Assembly (NCBI GenBank): GCA_965240325.2
Contig: OZ251222.1
Span: 4,898,001 to 4,962,000 of the forward strand
Length of the DNA stretch: 64,000 bases
From: Rebecca billardiae RCC1528
Lineage: Eukaryota > Protista > Haptophyta
Direction: 5' to 3'
How positions within the stretch are numbered: position 1 is the stretch's first letter; each line of letters opens with the position of its first letter. Shown here one piece after another: positions 14,478 to 40,000 of this stretch. The position numbers and the translations under genes are program-made. The notes beneath the pieces were generated by a model that worked only from the letters and a program-made list of their open reading frames with translations, made no database searches and was not told the origin of the DNA.

Positions 14478-16062
14478 GACGACATGATCCGATGACAATA
14501 ATAATAATATAATTTAGTGTGACACAGTGACGCAAGGCTGCAGCTCGGATTGTTAGAGCAGGACAGATACGATTGCACTCGTCGATACAGCACGTGTGCA
14601 TGGGCTGCAGTCCGCCTGGATCGACCCCGCTGCCAGTCGCGGACGACATGTGACGGCTCGGGCTCGGCCCGGGGCCGGGCACTCCGCCCGTGGCCGTGTA
14701 CGGAGTACTGGTACTGTGGTAGTGCAAGGCGCGGCCACCCAGAATCCAGATCCGACGACTCGATCATGTCAATGCGTCGCAACCAACCGGGCGCGCGCTG
14801 AAACAGATCATCATCACTCTGGGGCCATCAACGGCCGAGACTCCACTGGGCTTCGGATCCTCTGGTTCGGTCCGGACCGTTCATGCTGCATTGCGTCGCT
14901 GTGACCAATCAGTACGCGTAGTTATTCCGCGTAGCTCATGCGGGCGGGCTTGCAGGCGAACTAGCTGATGAGACTCGGAGGCCATTAACGTACAGCCGTT
15001 TGCCCCGACCGTAGTGCGGACAGCGGTCACATATCATTATTTCAGTGGCAGCCCACGCCGCGCTTTTCACATCCGCTTTACTGAGGACCCGGACTCACCG
15101 CTCGCTAGTCCGCATCACGGACGACGCTGCTTATAATCACTACAATATTAGACGACGTCCGCAGGGCCCGGACACTGTGCTGGTATCAGTGAGCGCTGGC
15201 GGACACAACTCGGTGGCACTGGCTGGCTGACTGCCACCGTGGAAGACATGCGCGGCAGATGATATGTATAGAGTCATCTGCCGCGCATGTTCAGACGGGT
15301 AGTGCATCCATGCGCGGCGTCCAAGTCCGCCTGATGAGTGACTTGGGGGATAGGGCATATCGGCGATCCGTGTGAGCTCCGAGCCGAGCGGTGCCACACG
15401 GTGGAGTACAGGCCGCCAACGACGCTACATGGCAGCGTTGCCAGCGCGACCAAATGCCATCATGATGGCGGGCCGCCCATACTACCCACCTGGCCACACC
15501 TATCTCAGATGCCACCATGAACTCACGCGCCCGGTCATGATTAATATCCTGTCCGCTCGATGGCTGCTGAGCAATATGTCTACGGCCGTCCGGTGGCTGA
15601 GTCAACTCACGGGCCTACGAGTTCGGCCCGCGACGGCGCGGCTCGTAAGCATCTGCAGCGGCGGTGGCTGACCATGAAGCCAAGCGGGTGACTTCACTGG
15701 CGCGCGACTACGCAAAGGCGCTGACAATGATGAACTCATCGAAACGCGCTGACGCCATGCAAACATGCACGGTGAACACTACTCTCTTATTAGCTTGTCG
15801 GCGGCCGCCGGCTGGACGCCATGCATCCTGCAGCGGCTAGATCGGGAATTCGTCAGTGATATGTCCGCCGTCCGGTGGAGGTCGGAGTGCTTGCCGTTAC
15901 TCGGTCGCCGACCGTCCCGACCAAAAAAAGCCTCGAGCCGCAACCGCCGCACCCGCATAGTCCTGCGGGCGCCTCGGTCGGTGGGTGACGGGTGCGCCGA
16001 GCCACATCAACTACTTATTACGAGCCAGTGGCGCAGCGGGGCGCTTGCCAAACCGCGGCATC

Positions 16063-19000: not shown

Positions 19001-22000
19001 GCCCACCACCGAGCCCTCCGCCCCCGTCACCTCCGCCTTCGCCGCCGCCGTCGCCACCGCCGTCACCTCCACCCTCGCCGCCTCCGACGGGCGAGCCCCT
19101 CCCGCCGCCGTCACCACCACCGAGCCCACCGCCGAGCCCACCTCCGAGTCCTCCGCCCAGCCCGCCCCCGAGCCCGCCACCCCCAGCGCCCCCGCCATCA
19201 CCCCCGCCATCGCCACCTCCATCACCGCCACCGTCGCCGCCGCCAGCACCACCACCACCGCCGCGTGCCGCGCCGTTCCCACCGCCCTCGCCACCGAGCC
19301 CGCCCCCCGCTCCACCGCCAAGCCCCCCGCCTAGATCGCCGCCGGCCCCTCCGCCTTCGCCTCCACCGCAGCCGCCGCCGGTTCCACCGCCCAGCCCGCC
19401 TCCTCCGGTGCCGCCACCGTCACCCCCACCGACGCCACCGCCGTCACTGCCACCATCCACGCCACCGCTGCCACCGCCAAGCCCGCCGCCATTACCACCG
19501 CCCTCGCCGCCACCGTCGCCGCCGCCTTCGCCGCCACCATCGCCGCCGCCGAGCCCACCACCGTCGCCACCGCCGTCGCCACCACCGGTGGCCTCGCCAC
19601 TGCCGCCGCCCTCTCCGCCGCCTTTGCCGCCGCCGAGCCCGCCGCCCTCCCCACCGCCCTTGCCACCGCCCTCGCCGCCACCCTCACCGCCGCCATTGCC
19701 ACCGCCCTCGCCGCCACCAACGCCACCACCATCGCCACCACCTTCGGCATCGCCACTGCCCCCGCCGTCGCCGCCTCCGCAGCCAGCGCCGAGCCCGCCA
19801 CCGTCACCGCCGCCCTCGCCTCCACCGAGCCCACCGCCGCCAGTCCCACCGCCCTCGCCGCCGCCCTCGCCGCCTCCCAGCCCACCGCCGTCGCCACCGC
19901 CCGCACCCCCGCCGCCACCGAGGGCGCAGCCCTTCCCTCCGCCGAGTCCACCTGCGCCGCCGCCCAGCCCTCCGCCGAGCCAGCCGCCTCAGCCGCCGCC
20001 GAGCCCGCCACCGGCGTCACCGCCATCACCACCGCCCTCGCCACCGCCGAGTCCACCGCCGCCGGCGCCGCCGCCATCACCTCCGCCGTCACCTCCGCCG
20101 AGCCCGCCGCCGTCTCCACCGCTCTCCCCACCGCCGTCGCCGCTGCCTTCACCGCCGCCGAGCCCGCCTCCATCGCCACCACCTTCGCCACCGCCGTCGC
20201 CACCACCGGTGGCCTCGCCGCTGCCGCCACCGTCCCCGCCTCCGCAGCCACCGCCGAGCCCGCCACCGTCACCGCCGCCCTCGCCTCCACCGAGCCCACC
20301 GCCGCCAGTCCCACCGCCATCGCCGCCGCCCTTGCCACCTCCCAGCCCACCGCCTTCGCCACCGCCCGCACCCCCGCCACCACCGAGGGCGCAGCCCTTC
20401 CCGCCGCCGAGCCCACCTGCGCCGCCGCCAAGCCCTCCTCCGAGCCAGCCGCCTCTGCCGCCACCGAGCCCGCCACCGGCGTCACCTCCGCGCCCACCGC
20501 CCTCGCCACCACCGAGTCCACCGCCACCGGCGCCGCCGCCATCACCTCCGCCGCAGCCGCCGCCGAGCCCGCCACCGACGCAGCCGCCGTCTCCACCGCC
20601 CTCGCCGCCGCCTTCACCGCCGCCGAGCCCGCCTCCATCGCCACCGCCGTCGCCACCACCGTCGCCACCGCCGGCGGCCTCGCCGCTGCCGCCACCATCA
20701 CCGCCGCCTTCGCCGCCGCCGACCCCGCCGCCATCACCACCGCCCTCGCCGCCGCCCTCGCCGCCGCCATCGCTACCGCCCAGCCCCCCGCCGAGCCCGC
20801 CTCCATCGCCACCGCCGTCTCCACCACCGTCGCCACCGCCGGCGGCCTCGCCGCTGCCGCCACCATCACCGCCGCCTTCGCCGCCGCCGACCCCGCCGCC
20901 ATCACCACCGCCCTCGCCGCCGCCCTCGCCGCCGCCATCGCTACCGCCCAGCCCCCCGCCGAGCCCGCCTCCATCGCCACCGCCGTCTCCACCACCGTCG
21001 CCACCGCCGGCGGCCTCGCCGCTGCCTCCGCCATCCCCGCCGCCGTTGCCTCCGCCGAGCCCACCGCCATCGCTGCCACCCTTGCCGCCGCCTTCGCCGC
21101 CCCCGTCGCCACCGCCCAGCCCCCCGCCGAGCCCGCCTCCATCGCCACCGCCGTCTCCACCACCAGCGGCCTCGCCGTTGCCACCACCATCACCGCCTCC
21201 GCAGCCGCCGCCGGGCCCGCCGCCGTCACCGCCGCCCTCGCCTCCACCGAGCCCACCGCCGCCTGTCCCACCGCCCTCGCCGCCGCCCTCGCCGCCTCCC
21301 AGCCCACCGCCTTCGCCACCGCCCGCACCCCCGCCGCCGCCGAGGGCGCAGCCCTTCCCGCCGCCGAGCCCACCTGCGCCGCCGCCAAGCCCTCCGCCGA
21401 GCCAGCCACCTCTGCCGCCACCGAGCCCGCCACCGGCGTCACCTCCGCGTCCACCGCCCTCGCCACCACCGAGTCCACCGCCACCGGCGCCGCCGCCATC
21501 ACCTCCGCCGCAGCCGCCGCCGAGCCAGCCACCGACGCAGCCGCCGTCTCCACCGCCCTCGCCGCCGCCTTCACCGCCGCCGAGCCCGCCTCCATCGCCA
21601 CCGCCGTCGCCACCACCGTCGCCACCGCCGGCGGCCTCGCCGCTGCCGCCACCATCACCGCCGCCATGGCCGCCGCCGACCCCGCCGCCATCACCACCGC
21701 CCTCGCCGCCGCCCTCGCCGCCGCCATCGCTACCGCCCAGCCCCCCGCCGAGCCCGCCTCCATCGCCACCGCCGTCTCCACCACCGTCGCCACCGCCGGC
21801 GGCCTCGCCGCTGCCTCCGCCATCCCCGCCGCCGTTGCCTCCGCCGAGCCCACCGCCATCTCTGCCACCCTTGCCGCCGCCTTCGCCGCCCCCGTCGCCA
21901 CCGCCCAGCCCCCCGCCGAGCCCGCCTCCATCGCCACCGCCGTCTCCACCACCAGCGGCCTCGCCGTTGCCACCACCATCACCGCCTCCGCAGCCGCCGC

Positions 22001-25000
22001 CGGGCCCGCCGCCGTCACCGCCGCCCTCGCCTCCACCGAGCCCACCGCCGCCTGTCCCACCGCCCTCGCCGCCGCCCTCGCCGCCTCCCAGCCCACCGCC
22101 TTCGCCACCGCCCGCACCCCCGCCGCCGCCGAGGGCGCAGCCCTTCCCGCCGCCGAGCCCACCTGCGCCGCCGCCCAGCCCTCCGCCGAGCCAGCCACCT
22201 CTGCCGCCACCGAGCCCGCCACCGGCGTCACCTCCGCGTCCACCGCCCTCGCCACCACCGAGTCCACCGCCGCCAGCGCCGCCGCCATCACCTCCGCCGC
22301 AGCCGCCGCCGAGCCCGCCACCGACACAGCCGCCGTCTCCACCGCCCTCGCCGCCGCCTTCACCACCGCCGAGCCCGCCTCCTTCGCCACCGCCGTCTCC
22401 ACCACCATCGCCACCGCCGGCGGCCTCGCCGCTGCCGCCTCCATCACCGCCGCCAAGGCCGCCGCCGAGCCCACCGCCAGCACTGCCGCCCTCGCCGCCG
22501 CCATCGCCGCCGCCCAGCCCACCGCCGAGCCCGCCTCCGTCGCCACCGCCGTCGCCGCCACCGGCAGCCTCGCCGCTGCCACCGCCATCCCCGCCGCCGT
22601 CGCCTCCGCCGAGCCCACCGCCATCTCTGCCACCCTTGCCGCAGCCTTCGCCGCCCCCGTCGCCACCGCCCAGCCCGCCGCCGAGCCCGCCTCCTTCGCC
22701 ACCGCCGTCGCCACCACCGGCCTCGCCGCTGCCGCCGCCCTCTCCGCCGCCTTTGCCGCCGCCGAGCCCGCCGCCCTCACCACCGCCCTCGCAGCCGCCC
22801 TCGCCGCCGCCCTCACCACCACCCTCGCTGCCACCTCACCCGCCGCCCAGCCCACCACCCAGCCCGCCACCGTCGCCACCGCCATGGCCACCACCGGCGG
22901 CCTCGCCACTACCGCCGCCCTCTCCGCCGCCTGTGCCGCCGCCGAGCCCGCCGCCCTCGCCGCCGCCCTCGCCGCCGCCCTCGCCACCGCCCTTGTCGCC
23001 GCCTTTCCCGCCGCCGAGCCCGCCCCCGTCGCCACCGCCCTCGCCACCGCCGAGTCCACCGCCGCCGGTGCCGCCGCCGTCACCACCGCCCGTGCCGCCG
23101 CCCTCACCACCACCCTCGCCGCCACCCAGCCCACCGCCCAGCCCACCACCCAGCCCGCCACCGTCGCCACCACCATCGCCACCACCGGCGGCCTCGCCGC
23201 TGCCGCCGCCCTCTCCGCCGCCTGTGCCGCCGCCGAGCCCGCCGCCCTCGCCGCCGCCCTTGCCGCCGCCCTCGCCACCGCCCTTGTCGCCGCCTTTCCC
23301 GCCGCCGAGCCCGCCCCCGTCGCCACCGCCCTCGCCACCGCCGAGTCCACCGCCGCCGGTGCCGCCGCCGTCACCTCCGCCGCAGCCGCCGCCAAGCCCG
23401 CCACCAACTCAGCCGCCGTCCCCACCGCCGTCGCCGCCGCCTTCACCGCCCCCGAGCACGCCACCGTCGCCGCCGCCGTCACCGCCTCCGTCGCCACCAC
23501 CAGCTGCCTCGCCCCTGCCGCCACCGTCCCCGCCGCCGTTGCCACCACCTAGCCCGCCACCATCACCACCGCCCCTGCCGCCGCCCTCACCACCGCCCTC
23601 GCCGCCGCCCTCGCCGCCGCCCAGTCCACCGCCGAGCCCGCCTCCGTCGCCACCGCCGTCGCCACCACCGGCGGCCTCGCCACTGCCGCCGCCCTCTCCA
23701 CCGCCTTTGCCGCCGCCGAGCCCGCCGCCCTCTCCGCCGCCCTTGCCGCCGCCCTCGTCGCCACCCTCGCCGCCGCCCTTGCCACCGCCCTCGCCACCGC
23801 CCTTGTCGCCGCCTATCCCACCGCCGAGCCCGCCCCCGTCGCCACCGCCCTCGCCACCGCCGAGTCGACCGCCCCCGGTGCCGCCGCCGTCACCACCGCC
23901 CGTGCCGCCGCCCTCACCACCACCCTCGCCGCCACCTAGCCCGCCGCCCAGCCCACCACCCAGCCCGCCACCGTCGCCACCGCCATCGCCACCACCGGCG
24001 GCCTCGCCGCTGCCGCCGCCCTCTCCGCCGCCTTTGCCGCCGCCGAGCCCGCCGCCCTCTCCGCCGCCCTTGCCGCCGCCCTCGTCGCCACCCTCGCCGC
24101 CGCCCTTGCCACCGCCCTCGCCACCGCCCTTGTCGCCGCCTATCCCACCGCCGAGCCCGCCCCCGTCGCCACCGCCCTCGCCACCGCCGAGTCGACCGCC
24201 CCCGGTGCCGCCGCCGTCACCACCGCCCGTGCCGCCGCCCTCACCACCACCCTCGCCGCCACCTAGCCCGCCGCCCAGCCCACCACCCAGCCCGCCACCG
24301 TCGCCACCGCCATCGCCACCACCGGCGGCCTCGCCGCTGCCGCCGCCCTCTCCGCCGCCTTTGCCGCCGCCGAGCCCGCCGCCCTCTCCGCCGCCCTTGC
24401 CGCCGCCCTCGTCGCCACCCTCGCCGCCGCCCTTGCCACCGCCCTCGCCACCGCCCTTGTCGCCGCCTATCCCACCGCCGAGCCCGCCCCCGTCGCCACC
24501 GCCCTCGCCACCGCCGAGTCGACCGCCCCCGGTGCCGCCGCCGTCACCACCGCCCGTGCCGCCGCCCTCACCACCACCCTCGCCGCCACCTAGCCCGCCG
24601 CCCAGCCCACCACCCAGCCCGCCACCGTCGCCACTGCCATCGCCACCACCGGCGGCCTCGCCGCTGCCGCCGCCCTCTCCGCCGCCCTCGTCTCCGCCGA
24701 GCCCGCCGCCCTCTCCACCGCCCTCGCCGCCGCCCTCGCCGCCGCCCTCGCCGCCGCCCTCGCCGCCGCCCTCGCCGCCGCCCAGCCCAGTGCCTTGGCC
24801 ACCGCCCTCGCCGCCGCCCTCGCCACCACCCTCGCCGCCGCCCTCGCCGCCGCCCTCGCCGCCGCCCAGCCCCCTGCCCTCGCCACCACCATCGCCACCA
24901 CCTTCGCTGCCGCCCTCGCCGCCGCCCTTGCCACCGCCCTCGCCGCCACCCAGCCCACCGCCGAGCCCGCCGCCGTCGCCACCGCCCTCGCCACCGCCGG

Positions 25001-28000
25001 CCTCGCCGCTGCCGCCGCCATCACCGCAGCCTTCGTCTCCGCCGAGCCCGCCGCCCTCTCCACCGCCCTCGCCGCCGCCCTCGCCGCCGCCCTCGCCGCC
25101 GCCCTCGCTGCCACCTCACCCGCCGCCCAGCCCACCGCCGAGCCCGCCTCCCTCGCCGCCACCGTCGCCACCCCCCGCACCACTGCCGCTGCCACCGCCG
25201 TCCCCGCCGCCCTTGCGGCCGCCGAGCCCGCCGCCGTCACCGCCACCCTCGCCTCCACCGTCGCCTCTTCCCAGCCCGCCACCGAGCCCTCCCCCAACAC
25301 CGCCGCCGTCCCCTCCGCCCTCGCCACCGCCGTCTCCTCCGCCGAGCCCTCCGCCTTTGCCGCCGCCGCCCCTGCCACCGCCCTCCCCTCCTCCCAGCCC
25401 CCCGCCAAGCACGCCACCGTCGCCCCCTCCATCGCCGCCGCCGCAGCCACCGCCATCTCCACCGCCCTCCCCACCGCCATCCTTGCCTCCTGCACCGCCG
25501 CCGCCACGCCCGCCGCCGTCGCCTCCTCCGTCCTTGCCACCATCCCCACCGCCGTCCCCACCACCTTCAGCACCACCCGCGCCACCGCCAAGCCCACCGC
25601 CCTCACCGCCACCTGCTCCACAGCCGCCGTCTCCGCCCCCGTCGCCGCCGCCGAGCCCACCACCTTCGCCGCCACCCAGCCCGCCGCCACCGCTCCCGCC
25701 GCCGTCGCCGCCGAGCCCGCCGCCGCCGCGCACGCTGCCCTTCCCGCCGCCGTCGCCGCCGTCGCCGCCGCTTCCGCCGTTCGTGTTCGGCGCGGACGCG
25801 CTGGTCTCGGACGCTCAGATCACGCTGTACACGACGAGCAGCAGCCCGGGCGCGGCTGTGCACGGCACGGTGAGCAGCGCCGGCAACCGGCACAACTTGA
25901 CGGTGGGCTTCTTGGCGGGCGCGTCTGTGGGCGCGTCCGGCACGGTGCGCGCCGCGTCGCACGGCATCGATCTCGGCCTGGCGAGCAGCTACAGCGTGAC
26001 AGCCGAGCAGGCGGCGAGCGTGGACTGCGCTACACGCACGCCCATCGCGTACGCGGACCGCACGGGCGTGCGCGTCACGTACCAGCTGCGCGATGCGACG
26101 CACCGCTCATCCGTGCTCACCACGGGCCTGAGCGTGAGCCTGACTCTGTCGCTCGTCGGCGGCTCCGACCAGAGCTTCTCGTGCGGCTCGCCGAGCGCGA
26201 CGACGGGCGTGGGCGAGTGCTCGGCCACAGTGAGCTCGGGCTGGTTCAGCACGGGCGCAGCGGGCAGCGTCGACGTGCTCGTCGACTTCAACTACGGCGG
26301 CGGCACCGTCGACTCGTGCTCTCGCGCGGGCGCGATCACGCTCGCCGAGAGCCCGACCACGTACACACTCCCATCGGTCGGCCTGCTGGGCCAGATGGCG
26401 CAGTCGCCCGTGTTCGCGGGCGACAGCTTTGAGCTGGTGATGTACGCGCACACGGGCGGCGTCGCGCTCATCACCTGGCAGATCAACATTGCGTACGACT
26501 CGAGCGTGCTCAGCGTTGCCAGCACGTCGGTCGCGAGCACGTACAACTCGCCGGAGGTGAGCGACAACGCGGCCGGCCTCGTGTCGATCATCGCGACGGG
26601 GCTCACCGGTGGCACGACGAACGCGCAGGTGACCGGCACGGCCGTGGAGCTGATCACGCTGACCATGAGCGTGGCCGGAGGTGCCTCCGCGGGCAGCTAC
26701 GCCGGCGCCATCTCGGTCGAGGTCGAGCAGTATGTGAACGACGCGACGCAGGTGTACGTGAGCGAGCAGGCGGGCGTGGTCGCCGACACGGACGACGGCG
26801 CGTCAGCAAGTGGCACGCTTGTGGTGGAGACGGTGGCGGTGCAGGGCTGGTTCGCATTCGTCGCTTCGGGCGAGCTGGTCAACACAGCGCCGCTCTCCGG
26901 CACCGACGTGACCACCGCGCTCAGCGTGCTCGAGCTGTACAGCCGCGCCGCCACTGCGTCTGCCACTCAGTCGAGCGGCTACTCGTGCCTCGCGCTCGAC
27001 TCGAGCGTGCTCGGCATCAGCTCAGGGTCGCCGTGCACGGTGGTGGCGAGCAGCTCGAGCACGTCGGGCGCCGCGACTGCCCTCGTGAACGTGACGCGCG
27101 TCTCGAGCGGCGCGGTGGTCGCGAGCGTGCCGCTGCGCGTGTGGCACCCGCTGTCTGCAGAGATCCGCTTTGGGCATGGCACGCTCTTCGCCATCAAGGG
27201 CGCGTCGCAGCCAGGCCAGTGCGGCACGCAGGCGTTCCAGTCGACGACGGCCAGCCTCGTCGCCTCGTTTGGCGGCACGGATCTGAGCACCGTGAGCGAC
27301 GTGGACGTGACGCGCGAGGCAACGCTCGCCTCGGGCGACGCCGGCGTCGCGAGCATCTCCACGTCCGGCACGACCGGCGTGGTGACGGTGGCGGGCGTGG
27401 GCGTCGGCTCGGCTGCGATCAGCGCATCCGGCTCGAGCCCGTCCATCTCGTCGACGATTGTGGTGTCGACGGCCGTGGAGCGCCTCATCGCATCGCTCCG
27501 GCCAGTGGCATTCAACTCGATTGCGTTCGTCGACTCGCCGCCGTCGGCGCTGAGTGTGGGCGCGACGAGCGGCTTCGACGCGTCGGCTGCTCTCGGGCAG
27601 ACGCTCACGGCAGAAGGGCAGACGGTGAGCGTGTACACGTACGCGCACCTCGGCGACGGCTCGTACGAGCTCGTGCCGTCGGCTGAGGTCACGCTGACGA
27701 GCCGCACGTCGAGTCTCACCGTCGCTGCGCCCGGCGACGCATCGTCGCCGTGGACGGCGACAGTGGCTACGTTTGCCACGTCGCAGGAGGGCCTGCTCCT
27801 CGACGCGAGCTGGATCGATTCGTGCAGCGCCGTGCTCGCGACGGGCCGCGCGCGCGTGGGTCTGGAGTTGCCCAACGCGGTGAGCGTGGCCGTCAGCACA
27901 TCGGCCGCCAAGGTGACGTTGCCGGGCGACCCTGCCGCCGAGCCGCCGACGTCGCTGCCCACGTCGCTCACCGTCACGATCACGGTCACGTTTGAAGACG

Positions 28001-31000
28001 AGTCGCAGGTGGACTTCACCACAGACCCGCGCACGAACATCACGCTCTCGGTGCCGTCGTCGTGCGCCACGTTCAACGGCGTGAACCAGGTGACGATGGC
28101 GAGCGGCGCAACGTGCACTGCGCTCAATGTGACCGTCTTTGTCGACTCGTACCTCCTGAGCGGCTTCGTCGAGGTGCCTGTCGTGACGGCTGCGGGCGCG
28201 TCATTCGAGATCACGCTCGAGGACGACACGCTCGGGCTGATCGGCGCGTCCACCACGTTCCAGCGCACGGCCACGACGCCCTCGGCCACGCTGAGCGACG
28301 GCACGGCTGTCTCGCCCGCGCTGCTGGCTGCAGAGATGGTGCTGGCTTCGAACGACACGCTCGTCGCAACCACGTCCGGCAGCACTGTCATCGGCGTGGG
28401 CGCGGGCGTTGCGCTCATCAACGCGACGTGGGGCACGCTCACAGCGTCAGCCACCGTCTACGTCGACGCGACCGCGGTGAAGGTGACGGCGCTGACGCTG
28501 GGCCTGGGCGGCTTGACGGCAGGCGCGTCGCTGCTGGCCATCAACGGCACGTCGAGCACGCTGAGCGCGCTCGTCACGCTCGAGGACGGCGTGCAGTACA
28601 CCAACCTGATGTCGCTGGGGTACGTGAGCGTGTCAGAGGTGCTCAGCTTTGAGAGCGACGACGCGGCCGTGCTCGGCGTCGACCCGAACGGCGTGGTGAC
28701 GATCGGTGGCAACAGCCGCGACGCGTCGAACACGATCACAGCTACGTCGCGCGACGCCGGTTCGGTGGCTGACGCCCTTGAAGTGGTGGCGAACCTGCAG
28801 CCTGGCACGCACGACGTGGACCTCGGCTCAGCGAGCGGACTGCAGCTCCAGCAGTCGGGCAACTCGCTGACGGTGCCCGTGCGCGTAAACACGGGTGGCG
28901 GCTCGGAGTACCTGGTCAACTTCCAGATCGAGCTGGCCATCGACAGCGCTGTCCTGGTCGCGACGTCGTGCAGCACGCTCTCGTGGGCCGAGTGCACGAT
29001 CAACGATCCGCTGAACGAGGTCAGGTTTGTGGGCAACACGGCATCGCAGATCACCAGCGGCACTGCCGCCTCGATCGGCTCCGTCACGTTCGACGTGCTG
29101 TCCTCGGCGAGCACGTCGCTGACGGGAAGCATCGTGGAGCTCGTGACCGTGCAGGGCGCGACAGAGACTCGCGTGCAGAACGCCGACATCTTTGCGGGCG
29201 CCGGCGGCCTCACGACGACCGTCAGCCGCCGGCGCGCGCTCGCGCTGGCCGCTGAGTACGTGCCGCCCCTGTTTGTGCCGACCGAGTCGAGCCAGGCGGC
29301 GCGCGCGCGGCGGCTGGCGGAGTGCTCGGGATGCTCCGCTGCCATCGTCGGCGACGTGAATGGCGACTGTGCCCTGACCTCATTCGACGTGCGCGTGCTA
29401 TCGCAGTTCGTCATCGGCGTGTCCGGGCTGACGACGTGCGTGTCCGCGCTCGACCCGACGCTGGACAACAGCACGGGTGCGCAGGACGTGCAGTACCTGC
29501 TGCGCGCGGTCGCGGGCAAGTACCGCTTCCTGACGAGCTACAGCATCACGTCGGGCGCCATCGGCGTCGGCACGAGTGACCCGCTCGTGGTGTCCGTCGT
29601 CGTGACGAAGGACGACAACACAGTCGCCGACGACAGCCAGACGAGCGTCTTCTTCGAGATCGGCGCGGCCGCTGCGTCGTACACGCCAGTGTACGTGAAC
29701 GGCACCGACAACGGCACGTCGGCCGAGGGCTACTGGGTGGGGCGTGGCGAGTATGCCAACGGCGTGTTCACACTGGGCGTGTACCCGAGCGGCGGGTGGC
29801 CACAGGCGCTCAGCGGGTCGTTGGGCGTTGCTGTGATGATCGAGACGACGGACGCGCTGGGCAACGGCGCGGATGACCGCAAGTTCCCGTTCCTCGGCTC
29901 GTCCGCGCAGTTCTACGCCGACTTCTTGTACCTGTTCGATCCGCTGCTCTCGACGGCGGTGATCGGGCCGCCACTGCCACCGCCACCGCTGCCGCCGCCG
30001 TCACCGCCGCCTCCGGCGCCACCGCCGAGCCCGCCGCCTCCGGCGCCACCGCCCATCCCGCCACCTCAGCCACCACCGTCGCCGCCGCCTTCACCGCCGC
30101 CATCACCGCCGCCATCACCGCCGCCGCTGCCTCCGGTGCCGCCCCCTTCCCCGCCGCCACTGCCCCCGCCATCTCCTCCGCCATCCCCGCCGCCGTCGCC
30201 TCCCCCTGCCCCAGCTCCTCCGCCCAGCCCACCGCCCACACCGCCACCGTCCCCGCCGCCGCAGCCGACGCCACCTCCGTCCCCGCCGCCTGCCCCGCCG
30301 CCCAGCCCGCCGCCGTCGCATCCGCCATCGCCGCCGCCGTCGTCGCCGCCGTCTCCACCACCATCGCCGCCGCCGCGCCAGCCGCCCAGCCCACCGCCGA
30401 GCCCACCGCCGTCGCCACCACCGGCGCCCTCGCCGCTGCCACCACCATCTCCACCGCCCTCTCCACCGCCGAGTCCGCCGCCATCCCCACCGCCCTCACC
30501 GCCCCCCTTGCAGCCGCCCTCACCACCGCCTTCGCCGCCGCCGAGCCCCCCTCCGTCGCCACCGCCGTCGCCCCCACCGGTGCCGCGGCCGCCACCAAGC
30601 CCGCCGCCATCACCACCGCCCTCAAAGCCACCCTCGCCGCCGCCATCGCCGCCGCCAAGCCCTTCTCCGTCGCCGCCGCCATCCCCACCACCACGGCCGC
30701 CGCCGAGTCCGCCGCCAGCACCACCGCCCTCGCCTCCGCCCTCGCTGCCGCCCTTGCCACCGCCCTCGCCGCCGCCAAGCCCACCTCCGTCACCGCCGCC
30801 ATCGCCACCACCTGCGGCATCGCCGCTGCCTCCGCCTTCCCCACCGCCGCGGCCGCCGCCGAGTCCGCCGCCATCACCACCGCCCTCGCCGCCGCCATCG
30901 CCGCCGCCCTCGCCGCCACCCTCGCCATCGCCCAGCCCGCCCCCGAGCCCGCCTCCGACGCCACCGCCATCGCCGCCACCGGCGGCCTCGCCGCAGCCAC

Positions 31001-34000
31001 CACCATCCCCGCCTCCGCGGCCGCCGCCGAGCCCACCGCCATCACTGCCGCCCTCGCCGCCACCCGCGCCGCCGCCCGCGCCGCCGCCCAGACCACCGCC
31101 GAGCCCGCCCCCGTCGCCTTCGCCGTCGCCGCCACCGGCTGCCTCGCCGCTGCCACCGCCGTCCCCGCCACCGTCGCCGCCGCCAAGCCCGCCGCCATCA
31201 CCGCCGCCCTCGCCACCGCCATCACCGCCGCCTTCGCCACCGCCCAGCCCGCCTCCATCGCCACCGCCGTCGCCACCGCCGTCGCCGCCACCGGCGGCCT
31301 CGCCGCTGCCACCGCCGTCCCCGCCGCCGTCGCCTCCACCCAGCGCACCGCCATCACCGCCTCCCTTGCCGCCGCCCTCGCCGCCACCGTCGCCACCGCC
31401 GAGCCCGCCTCCTTCGCCACCGCCGTCGCCACCACCATCGCCGCCGCCGGCGGCATCGCCCCTGCCGCCGCCATCACCGCCTCCGCGGCCACCGCCGAGC
31501 CCACCGCCATCACTGCCGCCCTCGCCGCCACCCTCGCCGCCGCCTTCACCGCCGCCGAGCCCGCCTCCTTCACCACCGCCGTCGCCACCACCATCGCCAC
31601 CGCCGGCGGCATCGCCACTGCCGCCACCATCACCGCCCCCGCGGCCACCGCCAAGCCCACCGCCATCACTGCCGCCCTCGCCGCCACCCTCGCCGCCGCC
31701 CGTGCCGCCGCGCAGCCCACCGCCGAGCCCGCCTCCATCGCCACCGCCGTCGCCGCCACCGGCGGCCTCGCCGCAGCCACCGCCGTCCCCGCCGCCGTCG
31801 CCTCCGCCCAGCCCACCGCCATCACCACCGCCCTTGCCGCCGCCTTCGCCGCCACCGTCGCCACCGCCCAGCCAACCCCCAAGCCCGCCACCGTCGCCAC
31901 CGCCGTCGCCGCCACCGGCGGCCTCGCCGCTGCCACCGCCGTCCCCGCCGCCGTCGCCTCCACCCAGCGCACCGCCATCACCGCCTCCCTTGCCGCCGCC
32001 CTCGCCGCCACCGTCGCCACCGCCGAGCCCGCCTCCTTCGCCACCGCCGTCGCCACCACCATCGCCGCCGCCGGCGGCATCGCCCCTGCCGCCGCCATCA
32101 CCGCCTCCGCGGCCACCGCCGAGCCCACCGCCATCACTGCCGCCCTCGCCGCCACCCTCGCCGCCGCCTTCACCGCCGCCGAGCCCGCCTCCTTCACCAC
32201 CGCCGTCGCCACCACCATCGCCACCGCCGGCGGCATCGCCACTGCCGCCACCATCACCGCCCCCGCGGCCACCGCCAAGCCCACCGCCATCACTGCCGCC
32301 CTCGCCGCCACCCTCGCCGCCGCCCGTGCCGCCGCGCAGCCCACCGCCGAGCCCGCCTCCATCGCCACCGCCGTCGCCGCCACCGGCGGCCTCGCCGCAG
32401 CCACCGCCGTCCCCGCCGCCGTCGCCTCCGCCCAGCCCACCGCCATCACCACCGCCCTTGCCGCCGCCTTCGCCGCCACCGTCGCCACCGCCCAGCCAAC
32501 CCCCAAGCCCGCCACCGTCGCCACCGCCGTCGCCGCCACCGGCGGCCTCGCCGCTGCCACCGCCGTCACCGCCGCCGTCGCCGCCGCCGAGCCCACCGCC
32601 ATCACCACCGCCCTTGTCGCCGCCTTCGCCGCCACCGTCGCCACCGCCCAGCCAACCCCCAAGCCCGCCTCCGTTGCCACCGCCGTCGCCGCCACCGGCG
32701 GCCTCGCCGCTGCCACCGCCGTCACCGCCGCCGTCGTCGCCGCCGAGCCCACCACCGTCTCCGCCGCCCTCGCCTCCACCGAGCCCACCGCCGCCAGTCC
32801 CACCACCCTCGCCGCCCCCCCGCCCTCCGCCCAGCCCGCCGCCGTCGCCACCGCCGGCACCGCCACCGCCACCGAGGGCGCAGCCCTTCCCACCGCCGAG
32901 CCCACCTGCGCCGCCGCCCAGCCCTCCGCCGATCCAGCCGCCTCTGCCGCCGCCAAGCCCGCCACCGGCGTCACCGCCATCACCACCGCCCTCGCCACCG
33001 CCGAGTCCACCACGGCCAGCGCAACCGCCGTCACCTCCGCCGCAGCCGCCGCCAAGCCCGCCACCGACGCAGCCGCCGTCCCCACCGCCGTCGCCGCCGC
33101 CTTCACCGCCGCCGAGCCCGCCTCCTTCGCCACCGCCGTCACCACCACCATCGCCGCCGCCGGCGGCATCGCCACTGCCGCCGCCATCACCGCCTCCGCG
33201 GCCACCGCCAAGCCCACCGCCATCACTGCCGCCCTCGCCGCCACCCTCGCCGCCGCCTTCACCGCCGCCGAGCCCGCCTCCTTCGCCACCGCCGTCGCCA
33301 CCGCCATCGCCACCGCCGGCGGCATCGCCACTGCCGCCACCATCACCGCCCCCGCGGCCGCCGCCAAGCCCACCGCCATCACTGCCGCCCTCGCCGCCAC
33401 CCTCGCCGCCGCCCGTGCCGCCGCCCAGCCCACCGCCGAGCCCGCCTCCGTCGCCACCGCCGTCGCCGCCACCGGCTGCCTCGCCGCTGCCACCGCCGTC
33501 CCCGCCAGCCTCGCCGCCACCAAGCCCGCCGCCATCACCGCCGCCCTCGCCACCGCCATCACCGCCGCCTTCGCCACCGCCCAGCCCACCTCCATCGCCA
33601 CCGCCGTCGCCACCGCCGTCGCCGCCACCGGCGGCCTCGCCGCTGCCACCGCCGTCCCCGCCGCCGTCGCCTCCGCCCAGCCCACCGCCATCACCACCGC
33701 CCTTGCCGCCGCCTTCGCCGCCACCGTCGCCACCGCCCAGCCAACCCCCGAGCCCGCCACCGTCGCCACCGCCGTCGCCGCCACCGGCGGCCTCGCCGCA
33801 GCCACCGCCGTCACCGCCGCCGTCGCCGCCGCCGAGCCCACCGCCGTCTCCGCCGCCCTCGCCTCCACCGAGCCCACCGCCGCCAGTCCCACCACCCTCG
33901 CCGCCCCCCCGCCCTCCGCCCAGCCCGCCGCCGTCGCCACCGCCGGCACCGCCACCGCCACCGAGGGCGCAGCCCTTCCCACCACCGAGCCCACCTGCGC

Positions 34001-37000
34001 CGCCGCCCAGCCCTCCGCCGATCCAGCCGCCTCTGCCGCCGCCAAGCCCGCCACCGGCGTCACCACCATCACCACCGCCCTCGCCACCGCCGAGTCCACC
34101 GCCGCCAGCGCCACCGCCGTCACCTCCGCCGCAGCCGCCGCCAAGCCCGCCACCGACGCAGCCGCCGTCCCCACCGCCGTCGCCGCCGCCTTCACCGCCG
34201 CCGAGCCCGCCTCCTTCGCCACCGCCGTCACCACCACCATCGCCGCCGCCGGCGGCATCACCCCTGCCACCGCCATCACCGCCTCCGCGGCCACCGCCGA
34301 GCCCACCGCCATCACTGCCGCCCTCGCCGCCACCCTCGCCGCCGCCTTCACCGCCGCCGAGCCCGCCTCCTTCGCCACCGCCGTCGCCACCACCATCGCC
34401 ACCGCCGGCGGCATCGCCACTGCCGCCACCATCACCGCCCCCGCGGCCGCCGCCAAGCCCACCGCCATCACTGCCGCCCTCGCCGCCACCCTCGCCGCCG
34501 CCCGTGCCGCCGCCCAGCCCACCGCCGAGCCCGCCTCCGTCGCCACCGCCGTCGCCGCCACCGGCGGCCTCGCCGCTGCCACCGCCGTCCCCGCCACCCT
34601 CGCCGCCACCAAGCCCGCCGCCATCACCGCCGCCCTCGCCACCGCCTTCGCCGCCACCGTCGCCACCGCCCAGCCCACCGCCATCACCACCGCCCTTGTC
34701 GCCGCCTTCGCCGCCACCGTCGCCACCGCCCAGCCAACCCCCAAGCCCGCCACCGTCGCCACCGCCGTCGCCGCCACCGGCGGCCTCGCCGCAGCCACCG
34801 CCGTCACCGCCGCCGTCGCCGCCGCCGAGCCCACCGCCGTCTCCGCCGCCCTCGCCTCCACCGAGCCCACCGCCGCCAGTCCCACCACCCTCGCCGCCCC
34901 CCCGCCCTCCGCCCAGCCCGCCGCCGTCGCCACCGCCGGCACCGCCACCGCCACCGAGGGCGCAGCCCTTCCCACCGCCGAGCCCACCTGCGCCGCCGCC
35001 CAGCCCTCCGCCGATCCAGCCGCCTCTGCCGCCGCCAAGCCCGCCACCGGCGTCACCGCCATCACCACCGCCCTCGCCACCGCCGAGTCCACCGCCGCCA
35101 GCGCCACCGCCGTCACCTCCGCCGCAGCCGCCGCCAAGCCCGCCACCGACGCAGCCGCCGTCCCCACCGCCGTCGCCGCCGCCTTCACCGCCGCCGAGCC
35201 CGCCCCCTTTGCCACCGCCGTCACCACCACCATCGCCGCCGCCGGCGGCATCACCCCTGCCGCCGCCATCACCGCCTCCGCGGCCACCGCCGAGCCCACC
35301 GCCATCACTGCCGCCCTCGCCGCCAACCTCGCCGCCGCCTTCACCGCCGCCGAGCCCGCCTCCTTCGCCACCGCCGTCGCCACCACCATCGCCACCGCCG
35401 GCGGCATCGCCACTGCCGCCACCATCACCGCCCCCGCGGCCGCCGCCAAGCCCACCGCCATCACTGCCGCCCTCGCCGCCACCCTCGCCGCCGCCCGTGC
35501 CGCCGCCCAGCCCACCGCCGAGCCCGCCTCCGTCGCCACCGCCGTCGCCGCCACCGGCTGCCTCGCCGCTGCCACCGCCGTCCCCGCCACCCTCGCCGCC
35601 ACCAAGCCCGCCGCCATCACCGCCGCCCTCGCCACCGCCTTCGCCGCCACCGTCGCCACCGCCCAGCCCACCGCCATCACCACCGCCCTTGTCGCCGCCT
35701 TCGCCGCCACCGTCGCCACCGCCCAGCCAACCCCCAAGCCCGCCACCGTCGCCACCGCCGTCGCCGCCACCGGCGGCCTCGCCGCAGCCACCGCCGTCAC
35801 CGCCGCCGTCGCCGCCGCCGAGCCCACCGCCGTCTCCGCCGCCCTCGCCTCCACCGAGCCCACCGCCGCCAGTCCCACCACCCTCGCCGCCCCCCCGCCC
35901 TCCGCCCAGCCCGCCGCCGTCGCCACCGCCGGCACCGCCACCGCCACCGAGGGCGCAGCCCTTCCCACCGCCGAGCCCACCTGCGCCGCCGCCCAGCCCT
36001 CCGCCGATCCAGCCGCCTCTGCCGCCGCCAAGCCCGCCACCGGCGTCACCGCCATCACCACCGCCCTCGCCACCGCCGAGTCCACCGCCGCCGGCGCCAC
36101 CGCAGTCACCTCCGCCGCAGCCGCCGCCAAGCCCGCCACCAACGCAGCCGCCGTCCCCACCGCCGTCGCCGCCGCCTTCACCGCCGCCGAGCCCGCCTCC
36201 TTCGCCACCGCCGTCGCCACCACCATCGCCGCCGCCGGCGGCATCGCCACTGCCGCCGCCATCACCGCCTCCGCGGCCACCGCCGAGCCCACCGCCATCA
36301 CTGCCGCCCTCGCCGCCACCCTCGCCGCCGCCTTCACCGCCGCCGAGCCCGCCTCCTTCGCCACCGCCGTCGCCACCACCATCGCCACCGCCGGCGGCAT
36401 CGCCACTGCCGCCACCATCACCGCCCCCGCGGCCGCCGCCAAGCCCACCGCCATCACTGCCGCCCTCGCCGCCACCCTCGCCGCCGCCCGTGCCGCCGCC
36501 CAGCCCACCGCCGAGCCCGCCACCGTCGCCACCGCCGTCGCCGCCACCGGCGGCCTCGCAGCAGCCACCGCCGTCACCGCCGCCGTCGCCGCCGCCGAGC
36601 CCACCGCCGTCTTCGCCGCCCTCGCCACCACCGAGCCCACCGCCGCCAGTCCCACCACCCTCGCCGCCCCCCCGCCCTCCGCCCAGCCCGCCGCCGTCGC
36701 CACCGCCGGCACCGCCACCGCCACCGAGGGCGCAGCCCTTCCCACCGCCGAGCCCACCTGCGCCGCCGCCCAGCCCTCCGCCGATCCAGCCGCCTCTGCC
36801 GCCGCCAAGCCCGCCACCGGCGTCACCTCCACGCCCACCGCCCTCGCCACCGCCGAGTCCACCGCCGCCAGCGCCACCGCCGTCACCTCCGCCGCAGCCG
36901 CCGCCACGCCCGCCACCGACGCAGCCGCCGTCCCCACCGCCGTCGCCGCCGCCTTCACCGCCGCCGAGCCCGCCTCCTTCGCCACCGCCGTCGCCACCAC

Positions 37001-40000
37001 CATCGCCGCCGCCGGCGGCATCGCCACTGCCGCCGCCATCACCGCCTCCGCGGCCACCGCCGAGCCCACCGCCATCATTGCCGCCCTCGCCGCCACCCTC
37101 GCCGCCGCCTTCACCGCCGCCGAGCCCGCCTCCTTCGCCACCGCCGTCGCCACCACCATCGCCACCGCCGGCGGCATCGCCACTGCCGCCACCATCACCG
37201 CCCCCGCGGCTGCCGCCAAGCCCACCGCCATCACTGCCGCCCTCGCCGCCACCCTCGCCGCCGCCCGTGCCGCCGCCCAGCCCACCGCCGAGCCCGCCAC
37301 CGTCGCCACCGCCGTCGCCGCCACCGGCGGCCTCGCCGCTGCCACCGCCGTCCCCGCCGCCGTCGCCTCCGCCCAGCCCACCGCCATCACCACCGCCCTT
37401 GCCGCCGCCTTCGCCGCCACCGTCGCCACCGCCCAGCCAACCCCCGAGCCCGCCACCGTCGCCACCGCCGTCGCCGCCACCGGCGGCCTCGCCGCTGCCA
37501 CCGCCATCACCGCCCCCGCGGCCGCCGCCAAGCCCACCGCCATCACTGCCGCCCTCGCCGCCACCCTCGCCGCCGCCCGTGCCGCCGCCCAGCCCACCGC
37601 CGAGCCCGCCTCCGTCGCCACCGCCGTCGCCGCCACCAGCTGCCTCGCCGCTGCCACCACCGTCCCCGCCGCCGTCGTCGCCGCCCAGCCCACCGCCATC
37701 ACCACCGCCCTTGCCGCCGCCTTCGCCGCCACCGTCGCCACCGCCCAGCCAACCCCCGAGCCCGCCACCGTCGCCACCGCCGTCGCCGCCACCGGGGGCC
37801 AAGCCGCAGCCACCGCCGTCACCGCCGCCGTCGCCGCCGCCGAGCCCACCGCCGTCTCCGCCGCCCTCGCCTCCACCGAGCCCACCGCCGCCAGTCCCAC
37901 CACCCTCGCCGCCCCCCCGCCCTCCGCCCAGCCCGCCGCCGTCGCCACCGCCGGCACCGCCACCGCCACCGAGGGCGCAGCCCTTCCCACCGCCGAGCCC
38001 ACCTGCGCCGCCGCCCAGCCCTCCGCCGATCCAGCCGCCTCTGCCGCCGCCAAGCCCGCCACCGGCGTCACCGCCATCACCACCACCCTCGCCACCGCCG
38101 AGTCCACCGCCGCCAGCGCCACCGCCGTCACCTCCACCGCAGCCGCCGCCAAGCCCGCCACCAACGCAGCCGCCGTCCCCACCGCCGTCGCCGCCGCCTT
38201 CACCGCCGCCGAGCCCGCCTACTTCGCCACCGCCGTCACCACCACCATCGCCGCCGCCGGCGGCATCACCCCTGCCGCCGCCATCACCGCCCCCGCGGCC
38301 GCCGCCAAGCCCACCGCCATCACTGCCGCCCTCGCCGCCACCCTCGCCGCCGCCCGTGCCGCCGCCCAGCCCACCGCCGAGCCCGCCTCCGTCGCCACCG
38401 CCGTCGCCGCCACCAGCTGCCTCGCCGCTGCCACCGCCGTCCCCGCCGCCGTCGCCTCCGCCCAGCCCACCGCCATCACCACCGCCCTTGCCGCCGCCTT
38501 CGCCACCACCGTCGCCACCGCCCAGCCAACCCCCAAGCCCGCCACCGTCGCCACCGCCGTCGCCGCCACCGGCGGCCTCGCCGCAGCCACCGCCGTCACC
38601 GCCGCCGTCGCCGCCGCCGAGCCCACCGCCGTCTCCACCACCCTCGCCTCCACCGAGCCCACCGCCGCCAGTCCCACCACCCTCGCCGCCCCCCCGCCCT
38701 CCGCCCAGCCCGCCGCCGTCGCCACCGCCGGCACCGCCACCGCCACCGAGGGCGCAGCCCTTCCCACCGCCGAGCCCACCTGCGCCGCCGCCCAGCCCTC
38801 CGCCGATCCAGCCGCCTCTGCCGCCGCCAAGCCCGCCACCGGCGTCACCACCATCACCACCGCCCTCGCCACCGCCGAGTCCACCGCCACCAGCGCCACC
38901 GCCGTCACCTCCGCCGCGGCCGCCGCCAAGCCCGCCACCGACGCAGCCGCCGTCCCCACCGCCGTCGCCGCCGCCTTCACCGCCGCCGAGCCCGCCTCCT
39001 TCGCCACCGCCGTCGCCACCACCATCGCCGCCGCCGGCGGCATCGCCACTGCCGCCGCCATCACCGCCTCCGCGGCCACCGCCGAGCCCACCGCCATCAC
39101 TGCCGCCCTCGCCGCCACCCTCGCCGCCGCCTTCACCGCCGCCGAGCCCGCCTCCTTCGCCACCGCCGTCGCCACCACCATCGCCACCGCCGGCAGCATC
39201 GCCACTGCCGCCACCATCACCGCCCCCGCCGCCGCCGCCAAGCCCACCGCCATCACTGCCGCCCTCGCCGCCACCCTCGCCGCCGCCCGTGCCGCCGCCC
39301 AGCCCACCGCCGAGCCCGCCTCCGTCGCCACCGCCGTCGCCGCCACCGGCGGCCTCGCCGCTGCCACCGCCGTCACCGCCGCCGTCGTCGCCGCCGAGCC
39401 CACCACCGTCTCCGCCGCCCTCGCCTCCACCGAGTCCACCGCCGCCAGTCCCACCACCCTCGCCGCCCCCCCGCCCTCCGCCCAGCCCGCCGCCGTCGCC
39501 ACCGCCGGCACCGCCACCGCCACCGAGGGCGCAGCCCTTCCCACCGCCGAGCCCACCTGCGCCGCCGCCCAGCCCTCCGCCGATCCAGCCGCCTCTGCCG
39601 CCGCCAAGCCCGCCACCGGCGTCACCTCCGCTGCCACCGCCCTCGCCACCGCCGAGTCCACCGCCGCCAGCGCCACCGCCGTCACCTCCGCCGCAGCCGC
39701 CGCCAAGCCCGCCACCAACGCAGCCGCCGTCCCCACCGCCATCGCCGCCGCCTTCACCGCCGCCGAGCCCGCCTCCTTCGCCACCGCCGTCGCCACCACC
39801 ATCGCCGCCGCCGGCGGCATCGCCACTGCCGCCGCCATCACCGCCTCCGCGGCCACCGCCGAGCCCACCGCCATCACTGCCGCCCTCGCCGCCACCCTCG
39901 CCGCCGCCTTCACCGCCGCCGAACCTGCCTCCTTCGCCACCGCCGTCGCCACCACCATCGCCACCGCCGGCGGCATCGCCACTGCCGCCACCATCACCGC

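Follow-up and report, generated by a model that had tools for sequence, protein, structure and literature searches.

A cohesin-dockerin pair beside conserved basic sites in a predicted giant surface protein of the haptophyte Rebecca billardiae

A giant open reading frame with a globular insert

A 64,000-nucleotide stretch of the Rebecca billardiae RCC1528 genome (GenBank assembly GCA_965240325.2, contig OZ251222.1, forward-strand positions 4,898,001 to 4,962,000), referred to here as the window and numbered from its first letter, encodes two cohesin-like domains, two basic sites, and a dockerin-like module within one reading frame. The GC content of the window is 70 to 85%. A single open reading frame (ORF) on the plus strand, 15985..58638, comprises 14,217 codons and is dominated by SPPP-type polyproline. 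Five stretches of the ORF are not Pro rich: two Cys-rich modules, a 1,387-residue insert, an Ala-rich island, and a C-terminal globular segment. As read from the sequence, the ORF appears to encode a giant type I surface protein that carries a cohesin-dockerin joint within the globular insert.

The length of the ORF, 42 kb, was rejected as evidence of a gene because, at ∼81% GC, the antisense strand also holds an ORF of 9,361 codons. This antisense ORF (30066-58151, minus strand) consists of Gly-rich repeats that mirror the polyproline rods, and given that CCN codons are GGN on the opposite strand, it is a by-product of composition that does not itself attest a gene. The giant gene is supported, instead, by a conserved cassette that lies in frame with the rods and by homologs that share the layout and align over the whole insert.

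The features of the insert are listed below. Residue numbers refer to A1, a 36-sequence alignment of the 400-residue unit made up of cohesin-2, linker, dockerin, and sandwich; predicted local distance difference test (pLDDT) values refer to AlphaFold2 (AF2) models.

25786..28803, plus strand: TMEM132-like half of the cassette, with immunoglobulin (Ig)-like domains, cohesin-1, Ig_TMEM132_4th, and more beta domains
26383-26832, plus strand: cohesin-1, identified by Pfam Cohesin, hhalign, and profile comparison with the PDB
26857-27150, plus strand: Ig_TMEM132_4th, directly after cohesin-1 (Pfam E value 7.9e-10; score of 39 bits, cut-off of 27)
28804..29226, plus strand: cohesin-2 (A1 residues 20-160), identified by Foldseek and VIA-align against solved cohesins; pLDDT ∼90-96
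29224-29235, plus strand: basic site 1, SRRR, where the cohesin ends and a short helix begins
29236..29301, plus strand: connecting peptide, a helix (A1 161-170) followed by disordered sequence (pLDDT <50 at A1 175-185 and 187-189)
29302-29313, plus strand: basic site 2, RARR with L immediately after it, a motif of the convertase type (R-x-R-R) in a low-confidence loop
29338..29514, plus strand: dockerin module (Ca loop 1, helix, Ca loop 2, helix), identified by profile comparison with the PDB, Pfam Dockerin_1, and ligand columns; pLDDT 91-97
29353-29388, plus strand: Ca loop 1, DVNGDCALTSFD, with Asp at positions 1, 5, and 12
29452-29487, plus strand: Ca loop 2, DPTLDNSTGAQD, with Asp at positions 1, 5, and 12
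29518..29946, plus strand: C-terminal beta-sandwich of the cassette, starting at a KYRFL motif; all-beta, pLDDT ∼87-97, conserved in homologs, and packed with the cohesin-dockerin pair

Two cohesins in a TMEM132-like ectodomain

An original prediction, made from the letters of the sequence, had noted a cohesin-like domain immediately before the basic sites and a second one upstream. Structural comparison bears out the first. The model of cohesin-2 has a type I cohesin, 4ums, as its top Foldseek match (E value 1.4e-6), and its residues 20-160 form a nine-stranded jelly-roll beta-sandwich, the cohesin fold (Pfam PF00963), that superposes on more than 25 cohesin entries with VIA-align Z scores of 11 to 13 (root mean square deviation [rmsd] 2.5 to 3.1 Å over 125 to 131 residues). 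Among Swiss-Prot models, the best matches are CbpA, OlpB, CipA, and an Archaeoglobus protein, with human TMEM132D and TMEM132B ranking lower. At the family level, 19 of 36 homologous segments match Pfam Cohesin, the best with an E value of 1.6e-9. Judged by its modeled fold, cohesin-2 is a true homolog of cohesin; its identity had been called correctly, but not its start, which had been put at 28845 and lies ∼14 codons earlier.

Four A1 residues, N16, D23, D25, and P88 (∼28792-29010), are invariant in the 36 homologs and belong to, or accompany, a motif, ANLxPxxxDVDLG, that precedes the first cohesin strand. They may form another metal site or a contact to the preceding domain.

The upstream domain, cohesin-1, is likewise a cohesin. 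Alignment of its profile with that of cohesin-2 by hhalign gives a probability of 97.4% (E value 1.2e-11), cohesins rank first when the profile is compared with the PDB, and 23 of 43 homologs match Pfam Cohesin (best 6e-8), although the window copy scores 21.1 bits (E value 3.8e-4) against a cut-off of 24.1. Both cohesins are encoded before SRRR and RARR and would thus lie distal to the basic sites, as had been proposed. The order of a cohesin-like domain, Ig_TMEM132_4th, and a single-pass transmembrane (TM) helix is that of a TMEM132-like ectodomain; the other TMEM132 Pfam models (N, 2nd, 5th, 6th, and C) found no match in the window copy.

A diverged type I dockerin

Downstream of the basic sites, the original prediction had recognized a duplicated loop followed by a helix as the dockerin signature. 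The two loops, like the SRRR and RARR motifs, are found where it had reported them, in frame in the ORF, and the AF2 model shows a helix after each of the loops (residues 212-222 and 245-255), so that the window copy has the two-segment loop-helix architecture of type I dockerins (Pfam PF00404). Single-sequence searches were marginal: Pfam gave E values of 0.052 and 0.0053 (14 to 17 bits), phmmer against the PDB matched dockerins exclusively but with E values of 0.17 to 0.6, and a search of NCBIfam returned nothing. A dockerin family profile was therefore built from 35 sequences (A2). The top 33 PDB matches of this profile are all dockerin chains, with a best E value of 2.6e-8 and both repeats aligned, and 22 of the 35 family members match Dockerin_1 (best 5.6e-7), which upholds the dockerin assignment.

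The Ca2+ ligand columns are strongly conserved across 122 modules. Asp occupies position 1 of loop 1 in 121/122 and position 12 in 122/122, as it does position 12 of loop 2 (122/122), and positions 3 and 5 are nearly always D, N, S, or T; G202, D203, D214, and D247 are invariant in A1. Loop 1 has the canonical length in 121/122 modules and loop 2 in 69/122, the window copy being canonical in both. On the strength of the profile and the ligand columns, the module is a true homolog of type I dockerin, with predicted Ca2+ binding.

The module also has features of its own. Position 6 of loop 1 is Cys, not Gly, in 75% of modules, and four Cys (A1 193, 196, 208, and 231) surround the dockerin, every one of them C-terminal to site 2. 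The two repeats are asymmetric (consensus GDxNGDCxF..D versus DPxLDG.....D) and are separated by a spacer of variable length. With their diverged consensus, the variable spacer, and the insertions in loop 2, they lack the near symmetry that permits dual binding in type I dockerins. No second dockerin was found in the window, where one dockerin and two cohesins lie on one chain; nor was any enzyme domain found there with Pfam or NCBIfam, and the suggestion of a cellulosome-like system that recruits dockerin-tagged proteins is not borne out. A single-sequence word search among proteins of 220 to 700 amino acids (aa) found no small dockerin-tagged proteins, a weak negative.

The cassette is conserved in algae and other protists

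When the C-terminal 1,200 residues of the insert served as the query in an exhaustive HMMER search, 685 homologous proteins were detected at an E value of ≤1e-3 and 160 at ≤1e-30, with many end-to-end alignments. The relatives include a hypothetical protein of another haptophyte, Diacronema lutheri (identity of 42% across the 1,200-residue query and of 50% across the 400-residue unit), further haptophyte hypothetical proteins from Prymnesium parvum, whose chain holds three cassettes, and Pavlovales sp. CCMP2436, and green-algal hypothetical proteins from Cymbomonas tetramitiformis and Mesostigma viride. These relatives by themselves point to a pavlovophyte-like haptophyte as the most likely source of the window. 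Chains with two or three cassettes recur among the homologs, and some members have been automatically named “TMEM132 fourth domain-containing.” Haptophytes, green algae, and a protist protein with cadherin repeats all retain the order cohesin-2, dockerin, sandwich.

In four homologs (P0006, P0016, P0128, and P0131), the cassettes appear to stop after cohesin-2, without a dockerin. These are either open cohesins available for binding in trans or truncated gene models.

Predicted docking of the dockerin on its own cohesin

The AF2 model of the three-domain A1 unit has a mean pLDDT of 87.7 and a predicted template modeling score (pTM) of 0.87. For a shorter construct of 256 residues (A3), consisting of cohesin-2, linker, and dockerin without the sandwich and modeled with pTM as a proxy for relative placement, the values are 89.1 and 0.86, and all five models of both runs have mean pLDDT values of 85.4 to 89.1. 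Because the cohesin alone makes up ∼59% of A3, a pTM of 0.86 would be too high were the dockerin not placed rigidly on the cohesin. Thus, the models predict direct docking in cis of the dockerin on its own cohesin-2, independent of the sandwich.

Covariation between the two domains points in the same direction. Mutual information with average product correction (MI-APC) was calculated on the 122 modules; the analysis is uncorrected for kinship, and the pairs share hub columns. The top-ranking pair, C75-C83 within cohesin-2 (z 10.3), serves as a positive control, and the top 100 pairs include 18 between cohesin and dockerin. The rate of cohesin-dockerin pairs, uncorrected for kinship, is 3.1 times that of cohesin-sandwich pairs (Fisher P = 0.0027) and 3.5 times that of dockerin-sandwich pairs (P = 0.017). 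On the dockerin side, the covarying columns cluster at loop-1 positions 9-14, of which 10 and 11 are classical recognition positions, and where the last helix ends; on the cohesin side, they fall in three strands.

The distribution of Cys bears on how the two halves would be held after a putative cut. In the window copy, cohesin-2 contains two Cys, a further four surround the dockerin, and the sandwich lacks Cys; the number of Cys on either side of site 2 is even in 102 of 122 modules. With even counts, the simplest pairing is within each domain, so that the halves would be held noncovalently; the counts argue against a disulfide across the cut.

Basic sites flank a variable linker

The two basic sites had been set beside the furin/kexin consensus R-x-R-R. 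RARR agrees with it, whereas SRRR is tribasic instead. In the window copy, the spacer that contains both sites is ∼40 residues long. Among the homologs, the distance from the AGxG of the cohesin to the GD of the dockerin ranges from 25 to 96 aa (median, 50), and the intervening sequence is not conserved: in A1, the linker can be aligned only at its two ends, that is, at a basic cluster after the cohesin and at an RRxL just before CxxC and the first Ca loop. The family consensus at site 2 is RRxL, with one nearly invariant Arg (R188), and members of the cadherin-type clade have a textbook R-x-R-R or K-R motif with Q or N after it.

To place these motifs against background, 135 dockerin modules were located in 107 homologs and compared with 6,750 control windows drawn from the cassettes of these homologs:

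[RK]R within 30 residues upstream of the dockerin: 81% of the 135 modules, versus 3.1% of controls
R-x-[RK]-R, at most 30 residues upstream of the dockerin: 38%, versus 0.2% of controls
RRxL within 30 residues upstream of the dockerin: 30%, versus 0.4% of controls
A second dibasic motif, 31-100 residues upstream of the dockerin: 76% of the 135 modules

Dibasic motifs are thus enriched 26-fold over controls and R-x-[RK]-R motifs ∼190-fold. Such enrichment at both ends of a variable, unconserved, disordered linker is characteristic of processing sites, not of structural contacts. In the three-domain model, residues 175-189, which lie between the sites and include RARR, are the only ones with a pLDDT below 50. 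At the level of motifs, site 2 has the attributes of a convertase or S1P substrate: RARR-L (29302-29316) falls in this low-confidence stretch of a protein with an N-terminal hydrophobic segment and a C-terminal TM helix, and the motif is conserved amid variable surroundings. Given the family consensus RRxL, the protease could equally be a subtilase of the S1P type.

Distal tip, rods, and membrane end

Outside the insert, the following features were identified.

16264..16305, plus strand: hydrophobic segment close to the N terminus (PWLALMLGALALAV), which may serve as a signal peptide or signal anchor and was recognized in the translated ORF alone
16336-16785 and 17200-17583, plus strand: two Cys-rich modules of ∼125-145 aa with a short SPPP spacer between them, forming the distal tip
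17584..25785, plus strand: distal polyproline (SPPP) rod, ∼2,737 aa, 70% Pro, ∼0.8 µm
29947..58146, plus strand: proximal polyproline rod, with SPPP over 8,536 aa to 55554 (∼2.6 µm) and Pro-rich sequence beyond
58147..58550, plus strand: membrane-near globular segment containing DVDGDG and ending at an intron donor, CAG/GTGCGG (acceptor near 58709)
59601..59675, plus strand: TM helix of 25 residues (LLGVLAVSAAVLLCACLGLGCLAAL), ∼1 kb beyond the end of the ORF, followed by an RRKRR stop-transfer stretch and a cytosolic tail

The rise of a polyproline II helix is ∼0.31 nm per residue, which, with a proximal rod of 8,536 residues, places the joint ∼2.6 µm from the membrane. In homologs, the cassette is likewise trailed by a Pro-rich stalk, with a TM helix in some. 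The proximal rod is interrupted at 55555-55830 by a 92-residue Ala/Thr-rich island, over which the +1 frame reads as unbroken PPPSPPPS. The island is therefore the SPPP repeat out of frame, and the ORF undergoes one shift of frame and a second that compensates for it. Whether genuine indels or errors in assembling the repeat, both stay open only by virtue of the high GC content.

Over ∼43 kb of coding sequence, no interruption was seen other than the GT..AG intron at ∼58551-58709, the splice sites of which were read by eye. The TM helix is in frame with plausible exons and would be part of the gene of the giant protein if the exons join as we infer. Together with the RRKRR stretch after it, the helix agrees with the membrane-anchored proximal part that had been postulated; the cytosolic tail is rich in Arg, Ala, and acidic runs. 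The membrane-near globular segment (58147-58550) has no match in Pfam, and the Cys-rich tip modules have none in Pfam or NCBIfam. The nearest language-model neighbors of the tip modules are bacterial and phage clusters with Lcl_C, a C-type-lectin-like domain (0.90-0.92, ∼120 shared features), a weak lead. The two modules may be a ligand-binding head.

A proposed precut joint and its alternatives

What the original prediction observed is confirmed, and its interpretation, a cleavable Ca2+-dependent clasp, is supported in part. The reading that is tentatively preferred here, at slightly less than even confidence, is a precut, releasable, noncovalent joint between cohesin and dockerin, dependent on Ca2+ and situated ∼2.6 µm above the membrane; cleavage, the protease, Ca2+ dependence, interface geometry, and release are the inferred parts of this mechanism. 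During folding, the dockerin would dock in cis on its own cohesin-2. A secretory-pathway subtilase, of the kexin/furin type at RR or of the S1P type at RRxL, would then cut the exposed loop, and cuts at both sites may excise the connecting peptide, as in proinsulin. The distal fragment (tip modules, the 2,737-residue rod, and both cohesins) and the proximal fragment (dockerin and sandwich, then the 8,536-residue rod to the membrane) would from then on be joined solely by a noncovalent, Ca2+-stabilized contact among cohesin, dockerin, and sandwich. Under force or upon loss of Ca2+, the joint would let go, so that the head could be shed or exchanged without tearing the membrane.

Several observations weigh against this mechanism. 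With respect to cleavage, site 1 lies in the ordered start of a helix (pLDDT ∼82-89) and is less exposed, and site 2 borders the ordered dockerin, with its last Arg assigned to a beta-bridge by DSSP; a cut is more plausible at site 2 because RARR is in a loop with a pLDDT of <50, whereas SRRR is in a helix with a pLDDT of >80. Moreover, a subfamily (P0090, P0124, and P0136) has a linker of ∼15 residues with a CxxG..C pattern and without a basic site. With respect to the modules themselves, the Pfam hidden Markov models that had been proposed as a check match homologs of all three modules (19/36 for cohesin-2, 23/43 for cohesin-1, and 22/35 for the dockerin) but not the window copies above the cut-offs: cohesin-2 has no Pfam match by itself (below the gathering score), and the dockerin scores 17.4 bits against 22.9 (E value 0.0053). 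Loop 2 of the window copy has Asn at position 6, where the family has Gly and where an NST sequon arises as a result, and Gly at position 9, and 43% of family members have insertions in this loop. The cohesin-dockerin covariation, with phylogeny uncontrolled, is suggestive and plays a supportive part only. Finally, among clusters of the AlphaFold Database (AFDB) and the ESM Atlas, no model has a matching two-domain arrangement, with only the cohesin part superposing; the structure libraries neither back nor contradict the cis arrangement.

A permanent, uncut cis joint, a less likely reading, would accommodate the points on cleavage. Such a joint would be a three-domain block, rigid and stiffened by Ca2+, on which the head is based, and its basic residues would be structural, for example as partners in salt bridges with the acidic dockerin, or would serve to bind anionic glycans. 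In favor of such a block, the unit is a single rigid body in the AF2 prediction, site 1 falls within an ordered helix, site 2 adjoins the ordered dockerin, and bacterial proteins in which a dockerin directly follows a cohesin exist without a processing site. The short-linker subfamily, without a basic site, implies that the unit can exist uncut, and P0090, P0124, and P0136 would be its natural “uncleavable” form. What speaks against a permanent joint is the placement of the 26-fold dibasic and ∼190-fold R-x-[RK]-R enrichment precisely at the ends of the variable disordered linker.

Assembly in trans, in which cleavage or breathing would free the dockerin to bind cohesin-1 or cohesin-2 of neighbors or paralogs and cross-link the rods into a mesh or fiber, would give a role to cohesin-1, which has no cis partner, and would suit both the homologs that end after cohesin-2 and those with two or three cassettes per chain. 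Such assembly is nevertheless improbable: AF2 confidently puts the dockerin on its own cohesin-2, the covariation between cohesin-2 and dockerin fits a dedicated pair, the searches for free dockerin-tagged proteins in the window and among the proteins of 220 to 700 aa found none (both weak negatives), and some of the dockerin-less homologs may be truncated gene models. Least likely, and to be given little credence, is the notion that the modules are relics, kept as structural beta-sandwich and EF-hand-like spacers without mutual binding and packed together by AF2 as an artifact of a shallow 36-sequence alignment, since the sub-threshold Pfam scores of the window copies, the off-consensus and often degenerate loop 2, and the lack of the same arrangement in any structure library are set against the invariant G202, D203, D214, and D247, ligand positions that are near-invariant in 122 modules from distant lineages, a domain order shared by haptophytes, green algae, and the cadherin-bearing protist protein, and the high mean pLDDT of all five models in both AF2 runs.

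The precut joint can be extended to a broader scenario, somewhat unlikely as a whole, of a eukaryotic, convertase-primed “mechanical fuse.” An ancestral ectodomain of the TMEM132/coherin type would have had its own cis dockerin, and cutting of the pair, in algae and protists, would yield a Ca2+-dependent, force-releasable coupling between the cell and a sticky, micrometer-long tether. If this scenario were true, it would provide a testable ancestral ligand for the orphan cohesin of animal TMEM132.

Comparison with known cohesin-dockerin and cleaved surface proteins

Cohesin-dockerin pairs are among the strongest noncovalent protein links and, to our knowledge, have been studied almost exclusively in bacterial cellulosomes. 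The cellulosomal type I pairs (1ohz/2ccl and 4fl4 from Clostridium thermocellum and 2vn5 from C. cellulolyticum) have the same two folds, with dockerin profile E values of 2.6e-8 to 1e-6 and cohesin Z scores of 11 to 12. In the cellulosome, however, the partners reside on separate proteins, the scaffoldin and the enzymes, and bind in trans, whereas the algal protein combines them in one chain of a eukaryotic host, with predicted cis docking, a putative cut site, and no enzymes. A matched pair within one eukaryotic surface protein, beside a conserved protease-type site, suggests a new use of this interaction as a precut joint released by force or by Ca2+ loss.

Closer in layout are noncellulosomal bacterial and archaeal proteins that carry a cohesin and a type I dockerin (clusters of ∼200-280 aa and a protein of Archaeoglobus fulgidus, 2xdh). 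Here, too, the cohesin is followed directly, on one chain, by a dockerin with Ca loops, without cellulases. Metagenomic clusters annotated “Cohesin/Dockerin type I domain-containing protein” are the nearest by language-model features (0.94, 192/256 features), AFDB clusters align across both modules (query residues ∼22-255), and 2xdh superposes on cohesin-2 with a Z score of 11.0. The prokaryotic proteins differ in being small and in lacking dibasic sites, polyproline rods, and TMEM132-like domains. In addition, their models place the modules differently from the algal unit (rmsd ∼20 Å, template modeling score by query ∼0.25), and the repeats of the algal dockerin have diverged from each other and contain extra Cys.

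Separable halves are also known from unrelated surface proteins. Notch after S1 furin cleavage (PMC2770060) is, like the proposed joint, a precursor cut in the secretory pathway whose halves stay noncovalently associated and can be separated by force or Ca2+ chelation, although the likeness is functional only. The SEA modules of mucins and the GAIN domains of adhesion G protein-coupled receptors are likewise cut in the secretory pathway within the folded ectodomain, and their halves stay noncovalently associated until parted by force; both are self-cutting. The folds of all three are unrelated to those of the algal unit, which has instead a convertase-type motif and is known from sequence and models.

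The animal TMEM132 proteins share with the algal family the core of cohesin-1 followed by Ig_TMEM132_4th and are single-pass membrane proteins. Sanchez-Pulido and Ponting (2017; PMC6030884) described the cohesin in animal TMEM132 and in cadherins of choanoflagellates and sponges, with dockerin homologs undetectable in vertebrates. The human TMEM132 adhesion proteins are linked to panic disorder and hearing loss, and their cohesin has no known dockerin partner (PMC6030884). Compared with TMEM132 and the coherins, the algal family has an extra cohesin together with a dockerin and a sandwich, and it is mounted on micrometer-long Pro-rich rods. The present findings bear on the orphan cohesin of TMEM132 in that relatives of this ectodomain carry a dockerin in the same chain. 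A literature search, outside of which older work on choanoflagellate cadherins lay, found no report of a dockerin in haptophytes or green algae, of a processing site between cohesin and dockerin, or of furin cleavage of TMEM132.

A link to the cohesin-bearing cadherins is provided by the homolog with cadherin repeats (P0083; L001:501-14789), which has the same unit of cohesin-2, RxRR, and dockerin. It is an intronless protein of 4,762 residues, encoded on a marine metagenome contig, with many cadherin repeats, Ig_TMEM132_4th/5th, and two such units. By its domain content, P0083 looks like a “coherin” of the choanoflagellate type; if it is one, cadherins of this kind would carry dockerins. On the contig, P0083 is flanked on both sides by similar giants.

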